Under the pieces are notes generated by a model that was given only the letters and a program-made list of their open reading frames with translations, had not been told where the DNA came from and searched no databases. Shown piece by piece: positions 4,868 to 46,511 of a stretch of DNA of 64,000 bases. A program made the translations under genes and the position numbers. The DNA is taken from positions 1,922,001 through 1,986,000 of the forward strand of contig CDROCS010000506.1 of the NCBI GenBank assembly GCA_977020255.1, given 5' to 3'. Numbering within the stretch: the stretch's first letter is position 1; each line of letters starts with the position of its first letter. Source of the DNA: Obrimoposthia wandeli (Eukaryota).

Positions 4868-5099
4868 AGAAACCTCAATTTTGGTTATGTCGCCATCTGA
4901 AACTCTGCCAGACACCACATAAAGTTATAGAATTTTTAGGCTGCGAATAATATAGGATCTTACCCCCTAATATCAATAGCTGATGCATAAATAAACTGCA
5001 AATAGAACATTAAACAGAAAATATCAAGACATTACCTAGTTAACAGCCGTAAACTGTCTATCGAAATACAGATTTAGCCCGAAAAAGAGAGTTGAGTTC

Positions 5100-19007: not shown

Positions 19008-19126
19008 CGCTTGGCGATGCCCTACTCTCACATGGGGAAGCCCCACACTACCATCGGCGTTATTACGTTTCACTACTGAGTTCGGAATGGAATCAGGTGG
19101 TACCGCAACACTATGGTCACCAAGCA
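19008..19126 (-). rRNA. rrf: 5S rRNA
   Basis: Reverse complement reads TGCTTGGTGACCATAG...CCGAACTCAG...GAGAGTAGG...CCAAGC; ends approximate. Confidence 0.95.
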
Positions 19127-19261
19127 AATCTGGTTTGCTTTCTATAGAAGTTTTCACTTCGTTTTAATCTGAAAAGCTATAAATAAAGAAGTCTTTAAAA
19201 CATAAAGTGTTCAATCTATTCTTAAGTCGATTATTTCAATTAATCATACTTTAATTTGTAT

Positions 19262-19396
19262 GGTTAAGCCTCACGGGTAATTAGTACAAGTTAGCTCAAT
19301 GCCTCACAGCACTTACACACCTTGCCTATCAACGTTGTAGTCTCCAACGGCCCTTTAGGGAGCTTAAAGCTCCAGTGAGAACTCATCTCGAGGCCT

Positions 19397-19427
<31 letters not shown>

Positions 19428-19596
19428 AGTTCCGAACTTAGCTACCGGGCAATGCTATTGGCATAACAACCCGAACACCAGTGGTTCGTCCACTCCGGTC
19501 CTCTCGTACTAGGAGCAGCTCCTCTCAATTCTCAAACGCCCACGGCAGATAGGGACCGAACTGTCTCACGACGTTCTAAACCCAGCTCGCGTACCA

Positions 19597-19629
<33 letters not shown>

Positions 19630-19631
19630 AA

Positions 19632-19674
<43 letters not shown>

Positions 19675-19703
19675 ACCGCCGTCGATATGAACTCTTGGGC
19701 GGT

Positions 19704-19759
<56 letters not shown>

Positions 19760-19880
19760 AGAACCACCGGATCACTAAGACCTACTTTCGTACCTGCTCG
19801 ACGTGTCTGTCTCGCAGTTAAGCTGGCTTATGCCTTTGCACTAACCACATGATGTCCAACCATGTTTAGCCAACCTTCGT

Positions 19881-19923
<43 letters not shown>

Positions 19924-20181
19924 ACCCACCAGACACTGTCCGCAATCCCGATAAGGGACCTACGTTAGAACATCAAACGTACAAGGGTGGTATTTCAAGG
20001 TAGACTCCACATCATCTAGCGACAATGTTTCACAGTCTCCCACCTATCCTACACATGTAGGTTCAATGTTCAGTGCCAAGCTATAGTAAAGGTTCACGGG
20101 GTCTTTCCGTCTAGCCGCGGGTACACTGCATCTTAACAGCGATTTCAATTTCACTGAGTCTCGGGTGGAGACAGCGTGGCC

Positions 20182-20279
<98 letters not shown>

Positions 20280-22162
20280 CATGAGCTTCGACCTAAGTCT
20301 AACCCAATCAATTAACCTTCCGGCACCGGGCAGGCGTCACACCGTATACGTCATCTTTCGATTTTGCACAGTGCTGTGTTTTTAATAAACAGTTGCAGCC
20401 ACCATTTCTCTGCGACCAACAATAGCTTACGGAGCAAGTCCTTCACCATCATTGGCGTACCTTCTCCCGAAGTTACGGTACCATTTTGCCTAGTTCCTTC
20501 ACCCGAGTTCTCTCAAGCGCCTTAGTATTCTCTACCTAACCACCTGTGTCGGTTTGGGGTACGATTCTCTCATATCTGAAGCTTAGAGGTTTTTCCTGGA
20601 AGCCGGGTATCAACTACTTCATCTCCGTGGAGACTCGTCATCAGTTCTCAGCATTCTCACTAAAGAGAGCGACCCGGATTTGCCTAAGTCACTTGCCTAC
20701 TACCTTAAACATGGACAACCATCGCCATGCTAGCCTAACCTTCTCCGTCACCCCATCGCAATATAAGCGAGTACTGGAATATTAACCAGTTTCCCATCGA
20801 CTACGCCTTTCGGCCTCGCCTTAGGAGTCGACTCACCCTGCCCCGATTAACGTTGGACAGGAACCCTTGGTCTTTCGGCGTGGAGGTTTTTCACCCCCAT
20901 TATCGTTACTCATGTCAACATTCGCACTTCTGATACCTCCAGCAAGCTTCTCAACTCACCTTCAACGGCTTACAGAACGCTCCTCTACCATGCAAAGAAC
21001 AAGTCTTTGCATCCGTAGCTTCGGTGGTATGTTTAGCCCCGTTAAATCTTCCGCGCAGACCGACTCGACCAGTGAGCTATTACGCTTTCTTTAAAAGATG
21101 GCTGCTTCTAAGCCAACTTCCTGGCTGTCTGAGCCTTTCCACATCGTTTCCCACTTAACATACACTTTGGGACCTTAGCTGACGGTCTGGGTTGTTTCCC
21201 TTTCCACGACGGACGTTAGCACCCGCCGTGTGTCTCCCGCGATTGAACTTATTGGTATTCGGAGTTTGCAAAGGGTTGGTAAGTCGGGATGACCCCCTAG
21301 CCTTAACAGTGCTCTACCCCCAATAGTTAGACGCGAGGCGCTACCTAAATAGCTTTCGAGGAGAACCAGCTATCTCCCGGTTTGATTGGCCTTTCACCCC
21401 CAGCCACAAGTCATCCGCTAATTTTTCAACATTAGTCGGTTCGGTCCTCCAGTTGATGTTACTCAACCTTCAACCTGCCCATGGCTAGATCACCGGGTTT
21501 CGGGTCTAATCCCAGCAACTATTCGCGCAGTTAACACTCGGTTTCCCTACGGCTCCGCTATTCGCTTAACCTTGCTACTGAAATTAAGTCGTTGACCCAT
21601 TATACAAAAGGTACGCAGTCACAGAACAAGTCTGCTCCCACTGCTTGTACGTATACGGTTTCAGGTTCTATTTCACTCCCCTCACAGGGGTTCTTTTCGC
21701 CTTTCCCTCACGGTACTGGTTCACTATCGGTCAGTCAGTAGTATTTAGCCTTGGAAGATGGTCCTCCCATATTCAAACAGCATATCACGTGTGCCGTCCT
21801 ACTCGATTTCACAGTAAGGTCGTTTTCATGTACGGGACTATCACCCTGTATCGTGAAACTTTCCAGATTCTTCCATTAACTTCCAAACTGCTTAAGGGCT
21901 AGACCCCGTTCGCTCGCCGCTACTAAGGGTATCTCTATTGATTTCTTTTCCTCGGGGTACTTAGATGTTTCAGTTCTCCCGGTTCGCTTCGTTAAGCTAT
22001 GTATTCACTTAACGATACCTTACTTAGTAAGGTGGGTTCCCCCATTCGGAAATCTGTGGATTAACGCTTTTTATCAACTCCCCACAGCTTAACGCAGATT
22101 AACACGTCCTTCATCGCCTCTGACTGCCTAGGCATCCACCGTATACGCTTAGTCACTTAACC
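19262..22162 (-). rRNA. rrl: 23S rRNA
   Basis: Complementary ends GGTTAAG/TTAACC and conserved core sequences; about 2.9 kb. Confidence 0.97.
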
Positions 22163-22427
22163 ATACAATCTAAAGTAGACCGTACAATTGAAATAACTAG
22201 GTATTATCTAGTTTTTTTCGCCTCAAGAATACTCAAGAACACTTCATTGTTATTACCGAAGTAATAACGTGTTTTAAGAACTTCTTTATTTATTCAGCTT
22301 TCCAAATTTTTAAAGAGCATTTGCTAAAAAGCAAAGATAAACGATGCTTATCTTTACTTTCTAACGTCTTTAACGTTTTCTATTCAAGCAATTTGTGTGG
22401 GCACTTACAAAGATTAACAACTTTACG

Positions 22428-22548
22428 TAAGGAGGTGATCCAGCCCCAGGTTCCCCTAGGGCTACCTTGTTACGACTTCACCCCAGTCATGAACCACACC
22501 GTGGTCATCGCCCTCCCGAAGGTTAAGCTAATGACTTCTGGTGCAGCC

Positions 22549-22602
<54 letters not shown>

Positions 22603-22760
22603 GACATTCTGATTCACGATTACTAGCGATTCCGACTTCATGGGGTCGAGTTGCAGACCCCAATCCGGACTACGACGCACTTTATGGGATTCGCTTACCA
22701 TCGCTGGTTTGCAGCCCTTTGTATGCGCCATTGTAGCACGTGTGTAGCCCTACTCGTAAG

Positions 22761-22813
<53 letters not shown>

Positions 22814-22853
22814 CTCCTTAGAGTTCCCACCATTACGTGCTGGCAAATAAGGA

Positions 22854-22889
<36 letters not shown>

Positions 22890-22895
22890 TTCACA

Positions 22896-22927
<32 letters not shown>

Positions 22928-22983
22928 CTCACAGTTCCCGAAGGCACTGAGGTATCTCTACCAGATTCTGTGGATGTCAAGAG

Positions 22984-23054
<71 letters not shown>

Positions 23055-23160
23055 ATTTGAGTTTTAACCTTGCGGCCGTACTCCCCAGGCGGTCTACTTA
23101 ATGCGTTAGCTTAAGAGCCCAGTTCTCAAGGAACCAAACTCCGAGTAGACATCGTTTACG

Positions 23161-23194
<34 letters not shown>

Positions 23195-23417
23195 ACCCAC
23201 GCTTTCGCATCTGAGCGTCAGTTACTTGCCAGGTGGCCGCCTTCGCCACTGGTATTCCTTCAGATCTCTACGCATTTCACCGCTACACCTGAAATTCTAC
23301 CACCCTCTCAAGAACTCTAGTTTGCCAGTTCGAAATGCAGTTCCCAGGTTGAGCCCGGGGCTTTCACATCTCGCTTAACAAACCGCCTGCATGCGCTTTA
23401 CGCCCAGTAATTCCGAT

Positions 23418-23473
<56 letters not shown>

Positions 23474-23600
23474 CTTCTGCGAGTAACGTCACAGTAACAA
23501 CGTATTAATGCTTACCTTTCCTCCTCGCTGAAAGTACTTTACAACCCGAAGGCCTTCTTCATACACGCGGTATGGCTGCATCAGGCTTTCGCCCATTGTG

Positions 23601-23683
<83 letters not shown>

Positions 23684-23971
23684 GGGATCGTCGCCTTGGT
23701 GAGCTCTTACCTCACCAACAAGCTAATCCCACTTGGGCTCATCTAGTCGCGAGAGCTTTCAAGAAGAGGCCCCCTTTCACCCGTAGGTCGTATGCGGTAT
23801 TAGCAGTCGTTTCCAACTGTTGTCCCCCTCGACTAGGCAGATTCCCAAGCATTACTCACCCGTCCGCCGCTCGACGCCAGAATAGCAAGCTATTCTTCGT
23901 TTCCGCTCGACTTGCATGTGTTAAGCCTACCGCCAGCGTTCAATCTGAGCCATGATCAAACTCTTCAATTA
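22428..23971 (-). rRNA. rrs: 16S rRNA
   Basis: AGAGTTTGATCATGGCTCAG at the 5' end and GATCACCTCCTTA at the 3' end; V1 region resembles Moritella. Confidence 0.98.
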
Positions 23972-36599: not shown

Positions 36600-37970
36600 T
36601 TATTCTAATAAGTTAACACTGCTTTTTTCGATAAGTTCGGCAGGTAATGGTTTTTTAACTTCAACTCCCAGTTCCACAAATTGCTGGGCTTGTTTAATTA
36701 AATTACCTTTGCCTGTAGCCAGACGCTTCATCGCCGAATCGTAACTATCCTGCGCCTTGTCTAATGCCACACCCATATCTTGCATATCATCACTAAACAA
36801 ACGTAACTTTTCGTAGATCTTACCCGCACGTTCTGCGATTAACTGCGCATTCTGATTCTGACGTTCATAACGCCATAAATTATCAATGGTGCGTAAGGCG
36901 ATTAATAAATTAGTCGGACTCACCAACATAATATTATTATCCAATGCAAATTTCATTAAGCTCGGGTCAGCCTCTAACGCCGCAAGAAATGCCGGTTCCA
37001 CCGCCACAAACATCAACACATAGTCTAATGTTTTCAAACCTTGTAATAAATGATAATCCTTACGCCCTAACTCACGAATATGGCTGCGCACAGAGCTCAC
37101 ATGTTCTTGTAATGCTTGTTTTCGTGTGATGTCATCTTCGGCATTAAAATAACGTTCGTAGGCTGTTAATGAAACCTTCGAATCAACCACTACATCTTTA
37201 TCTTGTGGCAAATGTACGATCACATCGGGCTGGAAACGCTTGCCATGTTCATTATTCAGGCTCACTTGCACATCGTATTCATGGCCTTCACGTAACCCTG
37301 ATTCCGACAATATCCGAGCTAAAATAACTTCACCCCAATTGCCTTGTTGCTTGTTATCGCCTTTCAATGCCTTGGTCAGATTAGCCGTCTCACTCGACAT
37401 AAGCTGATACACTTGTTGTAACCGGGCGACTTCGGATTGCAAGCTATGACGCTCTTTCGCCTCATTAGAATACACCTCTTGAACTTGCTGTTTAAAGCCT
37501 TCGAGTTGAGTTTTTAATGGCGACAACAGTAATTCCACACTAGACTTATTTAGTTCTTTGAAGTTGTCGGTTTTACTATCAAAAATCTTATTCGCTAGAT
37601 TTTCAAATTGCTGTTGTAAGCGTTGTTCTGATTGCGCTTGCAAGGCCAATTTTTCTTCACTGGCTTGGCGTTCAGCTTGTAAACGAATATCACTTTCACG
37701 CAATCGTGACATCACTTTAATTAGCTGGTTGTTTTGCGAATCTAATTTTAATTTGTTGTTATCATGCTCTTGTTGTAATTGCTCATAATTGTAATTAACG
37801 TTATCCAATTGCTGCTCTAACAACTCAACATCATGACTTAACGTTTGCATAGATAATGTCGCTTGCTGATTTTTACGAATAGCAATCAGCGCACAGATAA
37901 TCGCGACACACGTCGCGGCGATATAAGGTAAGACAGGCAACAAGAAATCAATACTCATAAAATAAATCAA
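36600..37970 (-). CDS. rmuC: DNA recombination protein RmuC
   Basis: QGNWGEVIL, QPDVIVHLP, VDSKVSL and LVSPTNLL; start may be the ATG at 37958. Confidence 0.93.
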   Translation of the reverse strand: MIYFMSIDFLLPVLPYIAATCVAIICALIAIRKNQQATLSMQTLSHDVELLEQQLDNVNYNYEQLQQEHDNNKLKLDSQNNQLIKVMSRLRESDIRLQAERQASEEKLALQAQSEQRLQQQFENLANKIFDSKTDNFKELNKSSVELLLSPLKTQLEGFKQQVQEVYSNEAKERHSLQSEVARLQQVYQLMSSETANLTKALKGDNKQQGNWGEVILARILSESGLREGHEYDVQVSLNNEHGKRFQPDVIVHLPQDKDVVVDSKVSLTAYERYFNAEDDITRKQALQEHVSSVRSHIRELGRKDYHLLQGLKTLDYVLMFVAVEPAFLAALEADPSLMKFALDNNIMLVSPTNLLIALRTIDNLWRYERQNQNAQLIAERAGKIYEKLRLFSDDMQDMGVALDKAQDSYDSAMKRLATGKGNLIKQAQQFVELGVEVKKPLPAELIEKSSVNLLE

Positions 37971-38209
37971 TGACGGAAGAAAGAGCTATGTGACAAAGTG
38001 CGGTCGATATATAACCACGTCGCCAGGCAACTTAAATACAGGAAAAAAATAATCCATTTATGGTAATTAGCCCCACTATCAATATGAGCAAATGGAACGT
38101 CACCGATCACGCTGTATAGCCAGATAACAAGTGGAAAGAACAAGAAAACTAACAGTTTCCAGAGAATCTTTAACGTCGGGCGATGTACTGTTATCGCTTT
38201 CATCAACAT
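37967..38209 (-). CDS. Small two-TM hypothetical membrane protein
   Basis: AAGGA RBS, two hydrophobic segments, stop abuts the rmuC start. Confidence 0.55.
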   Translation of the reverse strand: MLMKAITVHRPTLKILWKLLVFLFFPLVIWLYSVIGDVPFAHIDSGANYHKWIIFFLYLSCLATWLYIDRTLSHSSFFRH

Positions 38210-38377
38210 GTTCCTTAATTATAGCGCTTAACAATGACACTTAAATGTCAGCGTTAATGATGCTGAAAATAGATAATGATGTTAGCCTAACCTGCTCAAG
38301 ATTAAAACTAATCTGCTAAGGATAATCACAATCAGAGCACATTTCAGAGAAAATAATGCAGATTAATTAGCTATCCC

Positions 38378-38405
38378 CCTTGAAACGAGACAAAATACCC
38401 CAACT
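38378..38405 (+). promoter_or_regulatory. Sigma32-like promoter upstream of the DksA paralog
   Basis: CCCCCTTGAA-N14-CCCCAACT versus consensus CTTGAA-N13-17-CCCCATNT. Confidence 0.55.
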
Positions 38406-38519
38406 TGTAATCTTCAGTTATTTTTTTGCCAAAGTAGGGTTAATACTCCTATATTATGGACAACTCAAATGTCTATTATGCTAATTAATTATAATCCGAA
38501 TACGAAATAGGTAATATAT

Positions 38520-38900
38520 ATGAGCGATTTTATGAATGAAGGCCAAGTTGCCTATTTCAAAGAAAAACTAGAAACAGAGCAGCAAGAGATCATAGCGCGT
38601 GTCGAGAATCAATCAATCAACGTGGTTATCTCAGACAGCAATGAAATGGCAGATGAAATTGACCGTGCAGCAATGGAAGAAGCACATCGTCTTGAGTTAA
38701 ACCGTATCGATCACGATAAACTACACATCAAGAAAATAGTGAAAGCATTACGTCGCATCGAATGCGGTGATTATGGCTATTGTGATAGTTGTGGTGATGA
38801 AATATCGATTAAACGCTTACAGGCTCGTCCTGAGTCGCGTTTATGCTTAGAATGTCAGTCAACTAAAGAGTTCACTGATCACAGCTTATACCGCCGTTAA
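38520..38900 (+). CDS. DksA/TraR family C4 zinc-finger protein (DksA paralog)
   Basis: DEIDRA coiled-coil tip (DxxDxA) and CDSC...CLEC; colinear with E. coli DksA but lacks roughly the first 28 residues. Confidence 0.88.
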   Translation: MSDFMNEGQVAYFKEKLETEQQEIIARVENQSINVVISDSNEMADEIDRAAMEEAHRLELNRIDHDKLHIKKIVKALRRIECGDYGYCDSCGDEISIKRLQARPESRLCLECQSTKEFTDHSLYRR

Positions 38901-39051
38901 TCCTACGCACAATCGAATAACCAGCTCTGGTTGTTATCAATAAAACGATAAAAGATGGAAGGTAATAACAATAGATGTTATTGCTTTCCTCATTTGCCGA
39001 ACCATATTAATCTGTTATATCTCCCACATAAACCGCAATAGGAATGCATCG

Positions 39052-41081: not shown

Positions 41082-41158
41082 TGGTCGGTGATAGAGGATT
41101 CGAACCTCTGACCCCCTGGTCCCAAACCAGGTGCGCTACCAAGCTGCGCTAATCACCG
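41082..41158 (-). tRNA. tRNA-Pro(TGG)
   Basis: 77 nt cloverleaf, anticodon arm CCTGG-TTTGGGA-CCAGG, encoded CCA. Confidence 0.97.
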
Positions 41159-41162
41159 AACA

Positions 41163-41247
41163 TGGTGCGGAAGGAGAGACTTGAACTCTCACACTTTGCA
41201 ATACTAGAACCTAAATCTAGCGCGTCTACCAATTCCGCCACTTCCGC
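41163..41247 (-). tRNA. tRNA-Leu(TAG)
   Basis: 85 nt with long variable arm, anticodon arm CTAGA-TTTAGGT-TCTAG. Confidence 0.96.
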
Positions 41248-41326
41248 ACAATTTTTCAACTTACTAGCAGGTAATTCTAGCAAGGGTGATAACTCAATTC
41301 TAAAAGAATATCTACGTTATCGAATA

Positions 41327-41403
41327 TGGGGCGACTGAAGGGGATTGAACCCTCGACAACCGGAATCACAATCCGGGGCTCTACCAACTGAGCTACAACC
41401 GCC
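41327..41403 (-). tRNA. tRNA-His(GTG), copy 1
   Basis: G-1:C73, anticodon arm CCGGA-TTGTGAT-TCCGG. Confidence 0.96.
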
Positions 41404-41407
41404 ATAG

Positions 41408-41484
41408 TGGTCGGTGATAGAGGATTCGAACCTCTGACCCCCTGGTCCCAAACCAGGTGCGCTACCAAGCTGCGCTAATCACCG
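41408..41484 (-). tRNA. tRNA-Pro(TGG), second identical copy
   Basis: Same sequence as 41082-41158. Confidence 0.97.
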
Positions 41485-46319: not shown

Positions 46320-46396
46320 TGGGGCGACTGAAGGGGATTGAACCCTCGACAACCGGAATCACAATCCGGGGCTCTACCAACTGAGCTACAACCGCC
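46320..46396 (-). tRNA. tRNA-His(GTG), copy 2
   Basis: Identical to 41327-41403. Confidence 0.96.
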
Positions 46397-46434
46397 ATTT
46401 ATCATTCATTACACAACTACTATAATAACTATAG

Positions 46435-46511
46435 TGGTGCGTCCGAGAGGAGTCGAACCTCCGACCTCACCCTCCGGAGGGGCGCGCTCTATCCAACTGA
46501 GCTACGGACGC
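46435..46511 (-). tRNA. tRNA-Arg(CCG)
   Basis: 77 nt, anticodon arm CGCCC-CTCCGGA-GGGTG, encoded CCA. Confidence 0.95.

Follow-up and report, generated by a model that had tools for sequence, protein, structure and literature searches.

How would a DksA scaffold that is blind to the alarmone guanosine tetraphosphate (ppGpp) behave? This question is raised by a gene in a stretch of 64,000 nucleotides (the window) covering positions 1,922,001 to 1,986,000 of the forward strand of contig CDROCS010000506.1 (C506), in the assembly deposited for Obrimoposthia wandeli (GCA_977020255.1). DksA requires ppGpp for transcription regulation in vivo and, among its well-studied relatives, to our knowledge just the tiny TraR proteins of plasmids and phages work in its absence. 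The gene encodes a DksA-family paralog in which most of the residues that form the second ppGpp-binding site (site 2) of Escherichia coli DksA have been replaced, and its product may be a ppGpp-independent factor of the RNA polymerase secondary channel. Coordinates are those of the window unless a contig is named.

38520..38900, plus strand: coding sequence of the DksA-family paralog, 126 amino acids, stop codon included (open reading frame listing, Pfam, phmmer, AlphaFold 2 (AF2)/Foldseek, and the ratio of nonsynonymous to synonymous substitution rates, dN/dS).

In E. coli DksA, R91, K94, K98 and K139 of site 2 contact the phosphates of ppGpp and L95 contacts the guanine, with R129 nearby (bioRxiv 10.1101/188680; PMC7676912). 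The paper describing the RNA polymerase-DksA-ppGpp structure reports that ppGpp binding, but not DksA activity, depends critically on L95, K98, R129 and K139, and that mutating R91 strongly reduces ppGpp binding. In the paralog, R91 is replaced by H65, K94 by L68, L95 by H69 and K139 by Q113, leaving just K98 (K72) and R129 (R103) of the set R91, K94, L95, K98, R129 and K139. Residues retained elsewhere are D71, D74 and A76 of the coiled-coil tip (D45, D48 and A50), the zinc ligands C114, C117, C135 and C138 (C88, C91, C109 and C112), R125 (R99) and E143 (E117). From E. coli residue 58 to the end, the HMMER alignment is ungapped and the E. coli number equals the paralog number plus 26, because the sole insertion, which makes helix 1 one residue longer than that of E. 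coli DksA, precedes T58. A MAFFT alignment of the paralog with 11 canonical DksAs gave the identical register. A first-pass annotation, made by eye from the letters, had proposed an ungapped register from D71 to C138, the same retained residues (E143 aside) and the same four changes, and had placed the changed residues in site 2; both alignments confirm the register and the residues, and the structure papers cited above agree with the placement.

The changes extend beyond these four, with R87 replaced by Asn (N61), R89 by Ile, R93 by Lys (K67), T131 by E105, A132 by S106 and D133 by R107. Of the basic cluster of R87, R89, R91, R93, K94, K98 and K139, the paralog has only K67 and K72 left, together with two histidines, and it gains an acidic residue, E105. 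Because R87, R89, R93, T131 and A132 are replaced as well, most of the basic patch that accommodates the ppGpp phosphates is gone. In the globular region, an ARPESR loop and Q113 contrast with the canonical ARPTAD...CKT. The codons concerned are as follows.

38652..38669, plus strand: coiled-coil tip, D45-E-I-D48-R-A50 (DxxDxA, equivalent to E. coli D71 to A76), invariant in 17/17 clade members and 11/11 canonical DksAs.
38700..38735, plus strand: helix-2 face, N61-K72 (NRIDHDKLHIKK), equivalent to the ppGpp site 2 face of E. coli DksA, R87-K98 (RNRDRERKLIKK), from the alignments.
38781..38858, plus strand: Cys4 zinc-finger/globular region, C88 to C112, with R99, the ARPESR loop (R103) and, nearby, Q113, from the invariant columns.

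Orthologues of the paralog were found at 81-100% identity in Moritella and, at ~60% identity and with a length of 128 amino acids, in ~40 Aeromonas species, a clade member being present in every Aeromonas species sampled. A profile search of the order yielded a second tier of matches at 110-125 bits in 12 genomes, from Agarivorans, Aliagarivorans and Alginatibacterium, and when 5.8 billion proteins were searched with a profile, four metagenomic sequences joined the clade. In the latter search, which was word-seeded and could have missed very distant members, the clade scored at least 121 bits and all other proteins at most 104 bits. N87, R88, H91, D92, E-S-R at 131-133 and Q139 (E. coli numbering) are invariant in all 17 clade sequences, and the paralog residues N61, R62, H65, D66, E105, S106, R107 and Q113 are likewise invariant across five genera. 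His occupies position 95 in 12 of the 17 sequences, and K98 becomes Ser or Gln in the outer groups of the clade. Moritella and Aeromonas together keep invariant the tip, NRI(D/E)HDKLH, R99, R103, the four cysteines and ECQSTKEF. In 11 canonical gammaproteobacterial DksAs, the invariant segments are RDRERKLIKKI and C(I/V)(D/E)CKT. Short DksAs of 120 amino acids that fall just under the score gap (mostly metagenomic, one from Desulfobacterium) retain R91, K94, L95 and K139; of three that were inspected, two (P0076 and P0116) have kept K98 as well.

Pairwise dN/dS values for the paralog were 0.02-0.1, both within Moritella and within Aeromonas, and the gene is under strong purifying selection. 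The alignments and these values indicate that the site-2 substitutions singled out in the first-pass annotation are real and are fixed across the whole subfamily. In a maximum-likelihood tree with an uncertain root and with long branches, the canonical gammaproteobacterial clade (99/99), the short DksAs and one DksA2-like sequence lie across a branch of 1.61 substitutions from the paralog clade. The branch that sets the canonical clade apart indicates that the paralog lineage is old rather than a recent copy, and the sequence comparisons assign the paralog to a distinct, old subfamily. Full-text searches of the literature turned up no publication on the clade, nor any on a DksA paralog under sigma32 control.

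A separate case of multiplicity was seen in a Neptuniibacter metagenome-assembled genome, in which two additional divergent DksA/TraR-type proteins of 126 amino acids each occur beside a canonical DksA. Both lack the H91/Q139 signature and an exact DxxDxA tip.

Membership of the paralog in the DksA/TraR superfamily is established by two Pfam domains that exceed their gathering scores, DksA_N (PF21157; residues 9-80, 46 bits against a cut-off of 27) and zf-dskA_traR (PF01258; residues 83-117, 50.6 bits against 24.9). Matches to the canonical DksA equivalogs span the whole of each model and fall under both cut-offs, with 106.1 bits against 115.5 for TIGR02420 and 94.6 against 289 for NF008045/PRK10778; the canonical DksA encoded on the same contig scores 265.7 bits on NF008045. 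Scores on the TraR models were 29.8 bits against a cut-off of 59.7 (TIGR02419) and 17.5 against 108 (NF010268). In a phmmer search of PDB, the closest solved relative was E. coli DksA (1tjl/5vsw; E 1e-24), followed by Pseudomonas aeruginosa DksA2 (4ijj), and residues 3-120 of the paralog aligned with residues 30-146 of E. coli DksA at ~40% identity. An AF2 model built from an 11-row alignment (mean predicted local distance difference test score, 77.7) comprises two helices, at 7-38 and 46-82, with a tip loop between them at 39-45, then the zinc-finger region and, at the C terminus, a further helix at 110-124. Foldseek returned significant matches to this model only for 5vsw_M, 1tjl_A, 7khi_M and 4ijj. 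The model thus predicts a DksA architecture with a full-length coiled coil. In domains and predicted architecture, the paralog resembles canonical DksA (E. coli b0145; TIGR02420/PRK10778; PDB 1TJL and 5VSW); it differs in its equivalog scores, shorter N terminus, site-2 changes and genomic context and branches outside the canonical gammaproteobacterial clade.

The N terminus lacks ~27 residues of E. coli DksA, as the alignment opens at E30 (D3 of the paralog), close to the roughly 28 estimated by eye. An in-frame ATG at codon 5 is used as an alternative start by some gene callers. All orthologues are 124-129 amino acids long, so the short N terminus does not result from a mis-called start. In E. 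coli DksA, deleting part of the N-terminal region raises activity, H39 contacts E21/Y23 and E127 in a pH switch, and N88I is a gain-of-function change. The positions of H39 and E127 are occupied in the paralog by Y12 and Q101, and the position of N88 by the invariant arginine of the clade.

A canonical sfsA-dksA-gluQ locus lies on the same contig, with dksA at C506:1180665-1181084, ~741 kb from the paralog, and its product carries every site-2 residue. The contig is a piece, at least 2.38 Mb long, of a Moritella chromosome, with rpoC at C506:2379045-2379977. The assembly as a whole is multi-organism, host plus bacteria; its 6912 contigs total 1.35 Gb and hold 7 dksA copies of the canonical type, along with at least 16 copies of bacterial rpoC. 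Exactly two genes with a PF01258 domain, the paralog and the canonical dksA, are present in each of Moritella sp. PE36 and Aeromonas rivipollensis. A sample of 401 genomes from the same GTDB order contained 44 with a clade member, each of which has at least two DksA-like matches. The expectation that the gene would be a second copy, with a canonical dksA elsewhere in the genome, is therefore correct, as is its placement outside the sfsA-dksA-gluQ context, the flanking genes being rmuC and creA.

Several other identities were considered for the gene and rejected. The dN/dS values and the invariant motifs rule out a decaying pseudogene. A recent duplicate of the resident dksA is ruled out by the ~40% identity to the copy on the same contig, the position outside the canonical clade and the long branch, and a mobile-element TraR-like gene by core-gene synteny within Moritella together with the TraR model scores. 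Since all four cysteines are present and invariant, the paralog is not a zinc-sparing protein of the DksA2 type.

Upstream of the paralog, a candidate heat-shock promoter was recognized ~115 nucleotides (nt) 5' of the ATG, together with a weaker match of the housekeeping type.

38379..38406, plus strand: sigma32-type promoter-like element CTTGAA-N13-CCCCAACTT, with the -35 element at 38379-38384 and the -10 element at 38398-38406 (pattern match).
38426..38455, plus strand: weak sigma70-like promoter match TTGCCA-18-TATATT, possibly basal (consensus scan, not above chance).

An extended form of the first element, CCCCCTTGAA-N13-CCCCAACTT, spans 38375-38406. The pattern CTTGAA-N12-15-CCCCA has a single match in the window, where 0.08 would be expected, and the element is retained in 7/7 Moritella loci; in the most divergent of these, 4 of the 13 spacer bases are changed and both promoter elements are unchanged. 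Across the Moritella PE36 genome, the pattern matched 13 times, against 2 for a reversed control, and besides the paralog the matches lie upstream of dnaK, grpE, clpB and rpoD. In Aeromonas, (C/A/G)TTGG(T/A/G)-N14-15-CCCC(C/T)AT is found ~70 nt before the ATG in 37 of 40 loci. When a looser pattern was applied to A. rivipollensis, those of the first 30 listed matches that lie outside long open frames precede hslV, grpE, dnaK and the paralog, and these four share a 26-27-nt geometry. Taken together, this is good comparative evidence at the sequence level for RpoH control of the paralog in two genera, Moritella and Aeromonas. The sigma70-like match is mostly conserved in the Moritella alignment, and scans for sigma70 promoters and terminators gave nothing above chance.

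Other features of these upstream regions were also observed. The spacer of the Aeromonas sigma32-like promoter holds an inverted repeat, GTCTG-N4-CAGAC, at about -70 to -40 before the ATG, and a nearly invariant block, TGGTACAAGGCCCGCCCTGATTT, lies ~150 nt upstream of the ATG in the same genus; judged by sequence, either may be an operator or regulatory site. Elsewhere in A. rivipollensis (C1:684039-684065), the motif CTTGAAA-N14-CCCCAT occurs 77 nt upstream of a RelA-like open reading frame (ORF), within the preceding open frame, and may represent a heat-shock-type promoter for relA. Pieces of the locus are present in four RNA-library (metatranscriptome) runs, two of which hold them on contigs of 4-12 kb that are possibly DNA. 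In the other two, independent runs, short contigs span the intergenic DNA at 38240-38401, upstream of the sigma32-like -10 element, and end at 38400/38401; they could represent the 5' untranslated region of a divergent 80-amino acid ORF or a mere assembly break.

We lean, with moderate confidence, towards the reading that the paralog is a ppGpp-independent, expression-controlled secondary-channel factor that is heat-shock-induced in Moritella and Aeromonas. From the sequence comparisons we infer RNA polymerase binding, ppGpp independence and sigma32 dependence alike. The invariant tip, the rim-helix arginine (R125 in E. coli), the zinc domain and the C-terminal helix point to a protein that would insert its coiled coil into the RNA polymerase secondary channel as DksA does. 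The systematic and conserved removal of the phosphate-binding patch suggests that ppGpp is not used in DksA's way. The factor would then act on transcription initiation, for example by destabilizing rRNA-type open complexes, without a need for ppGpp, and its activity would be set by the amount made; in Moritella and Aeromonas, a heat-shock promoter of the sigma32 (RpoH) type would drive its synthesis.

F plasmid TraR (TIGR02419; PDB 5W1S and 6N57) provides the proposed functional analogy. The residues with which DksA binds ppGpp have no counterpart in TraR, yet TraR reproduces the combined effect of DksA and ppGpp; factors of its type are regulated through conditional expression, whereas the level of DksA is reported to be constant. 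The sigma32-type promoter before the paralog fits the TraR logic of control by timing of synthesis, rather than by a ligand, and would distinguish it from DksA. In form, the two proteins differ, since TraR has 73 amino acids, lacks the first coiled-coil helix and resides on mobile elements, whereas the paralog is chromosomal and has 126 amino acids and two long helices.

Several observations weigh against the reading just given. Moritella and Aeromonas keep K98 and R129, two of the residues that matter most in site 2, and histidines are able to bind phosphates or to stack on a base, so that the paralog may still bind ppGpp more weakly or in a manner that depends on pH. What is seen of the sigma32-like element is a match in sequence and not a mapped start, the Aeromonas -35 element is CTTGGT and not CTTGAA, and the Agarivorans group has a sigma70-like TTGAAA-16-TAAAAT in place of the element, which implies that any heat-shock control would not extend to the clade as a whole. 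The metatranscriptome contigs over the paralog show no strand, start or level and cannot prove transcription. In addition, Rhodobacter sphaeroides RSP0166 is annotated as a DksA paralog and does not act like DksA.

The main rival, which we regard as unlikely, is that the paralog is an ordinary ppGpp-responsive DksA isoform that backs up or supplements DksA under some condition, with ppGpp still held by the two histidines, K72 and R103, possibly less tightly or depending on pH. A DksA-like fold and tip and the presence of K98 and R129 equivalents in Moritella and Aeromonas are in keeping with this, and P. aeruginosa DksA2 (PDB 4IJJ; fold match, E 2e-6) supplies a precedent for a conditionally expressed and functionally equivalent paralog, being made under zinc starvation and resembling the present protein as a second DksA beside the housekeeping one, of similar length and with a shortened N terminus. 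DksA2, however, has lost zinc-finger cysteines, is Zur-regulated and works with ppGpp, and its site-2 positions in the HMMER alignment are still R, K, L and K, whereas the paralog has kept its cysteines and changed site 2. Three of the four phosphate-contacting residues (R91, K94 and K139) and the base-contacting L95 are replaced in the paralog, the neighbouring R87, R89 and R93 are replaced too, and E105 adds an acidic group; single changes at L95 or K139 suffice to abolish ppGpp action in E. coli. The loss of K98 to Ser or Gln in the wider clade also speaks against such an isoform. A different use of the rebuilt pocket, where DksA meets the beta' rim helices, is improbable in our estimation: it might be a new sensor for another ligand, a metal ion or pH, in which the invariant polar set H65, D66, (H69), E105, S106, R107 and Q113 would bind the ligand or metal and the histidines would sense pH. 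If so, the DksA scaffold would carry a second, ppGpp-independent signal input to RNA polymerase, under sigma32 control.

Of low probability is a competitor that fills the secondary channel, is weak or inert on initiation and tunes or blocks the entry of DksA, GreA and GreB in a dominant-negative or Rnk-like manner. Conservation of the rim-helix-binding R125 and of the globular domain would serve such a role, a clade member always occurs alongside another DksA-like gene, and secondary-channel competition is established for other factors (Rnk). Mere occupancy would not, however, predict a tip, D-x-x-D-R-A with the following EE, that is invariant in the clade and identical to that of canonical DksA, and this invariance makes the dominant-negative role suggested in the first pass less likely. 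We give an equally low probability to a protein that is no RNA polymerase factor, or has another partner, and whose role is linked to its neighbours (creA, or polyamine or pyrBI genes). RSP0166 and Agrobacterium tumefaciens Atu0905 (PDB 2KQ9; sequence match to the paralog, E 6e-7) are likewise short chromosomal DksA/TraR paralogs beside a functional DksA and illustrate that the DksA/TraR annotation does not guarantee DksA function; a loose linkage to creA is common to Moritella and Aeromonas, and the Agarivorans gene lies immediately before pyrBI. In RSP0166 and Atu0905, however, the tip motif is defective or displaced, the coiled coil is shorter and the C-terminal helix is missing, whereas in the paralog the DxxDxA tip is exact, the coiled coil has its full length and the C-terminal helix is present, with E143 conserved. 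The neighbours, moreover, vary between lineages.

The gene order around the paralog in Moritella is rsmB-trkA-trkH (plus), rmuC and the 80-amino acid membrane ORF (minus), the paralog (plus), creA (plus) and a 245-amino acid membrane protein (minus), and this neighbourhood, in which neither sfsA nor gluQ adjoins the gene, is shared throughout the genus. The divergent neighbours of the Aeromonas paralog are a GlnA-like gene and one for a class-III aminotransferase, with creA 1.4-1.8 kb downstream. In Agarivorans, the paralog precedes pyrB-pyrI on the same strand by 51 nt (~130 nt in Aliagarivorans), and in both genera it is divergent from a gene for a PotF-like solute-binding protein. No neighbour is common to the Agarivorans loci and those of Moritella and Aeromonas, and as a clue to function the neighbours are weak. 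The GlnA-like gene of Aeromonas is possibly of the PuuA type, and genes of polyamine type adjoin the paralog in two lineages. No sign of a mobile element was seen around the paralog, the context being chromosomal and syntenic within each genus. Two RNA hairpins follow the stop codon.

38916-38935, plus strand: smaller hairpin downstream of the paralog (RNA fold).
38954..38991, plus strand: stem-loop in the interval from the paralog to creA, with a 14-bp core and then UCAUUU (RNA fold, z = -2.1).

The larger stem-loop is a possible weak terminator, although a simple terminator scan gave no call there, and the presence of both hairpins suggests that the paralog may be monocistronic. On the other side, the divergent 80-amino acid ORF, a predicted membrane protein at 37967-38209 (minus strand), overlaps the rmuC start by 4 nt and has no Pfam match; it shows 85-89% identity in the two Moritella loci in which it was seen and was not found in the most divergent Moritella locus. 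Further afield, the window holds a complete rRNA operon at 19009-23971 (minus strand), tRNA clusters at 41085-41484 and 46323-46511 (minus strand) that flank a gene for a 1467-amino acid MshQ-like protein (DUF6701, laminin-G), and a ribosomal protein L31 leader at 4872-4921 (minus strand).

A full-length chromosomal DksA paralog with a replaced ppGpp pocket would be a natural separation-of-function variant, carried by Aeromonas, a genus of fish and human pathogens, and by psychrophilic Moritella. Should sigma32 drive its expression, protein-folding stress could impose a stringent-like, alarmone-independent brake on RNA polymerase, the heat-shock response would be tied directly to secondary-channel control of the enzyme, and the old "DnaK suppressor" phenotype would acquire a physiological meaning.
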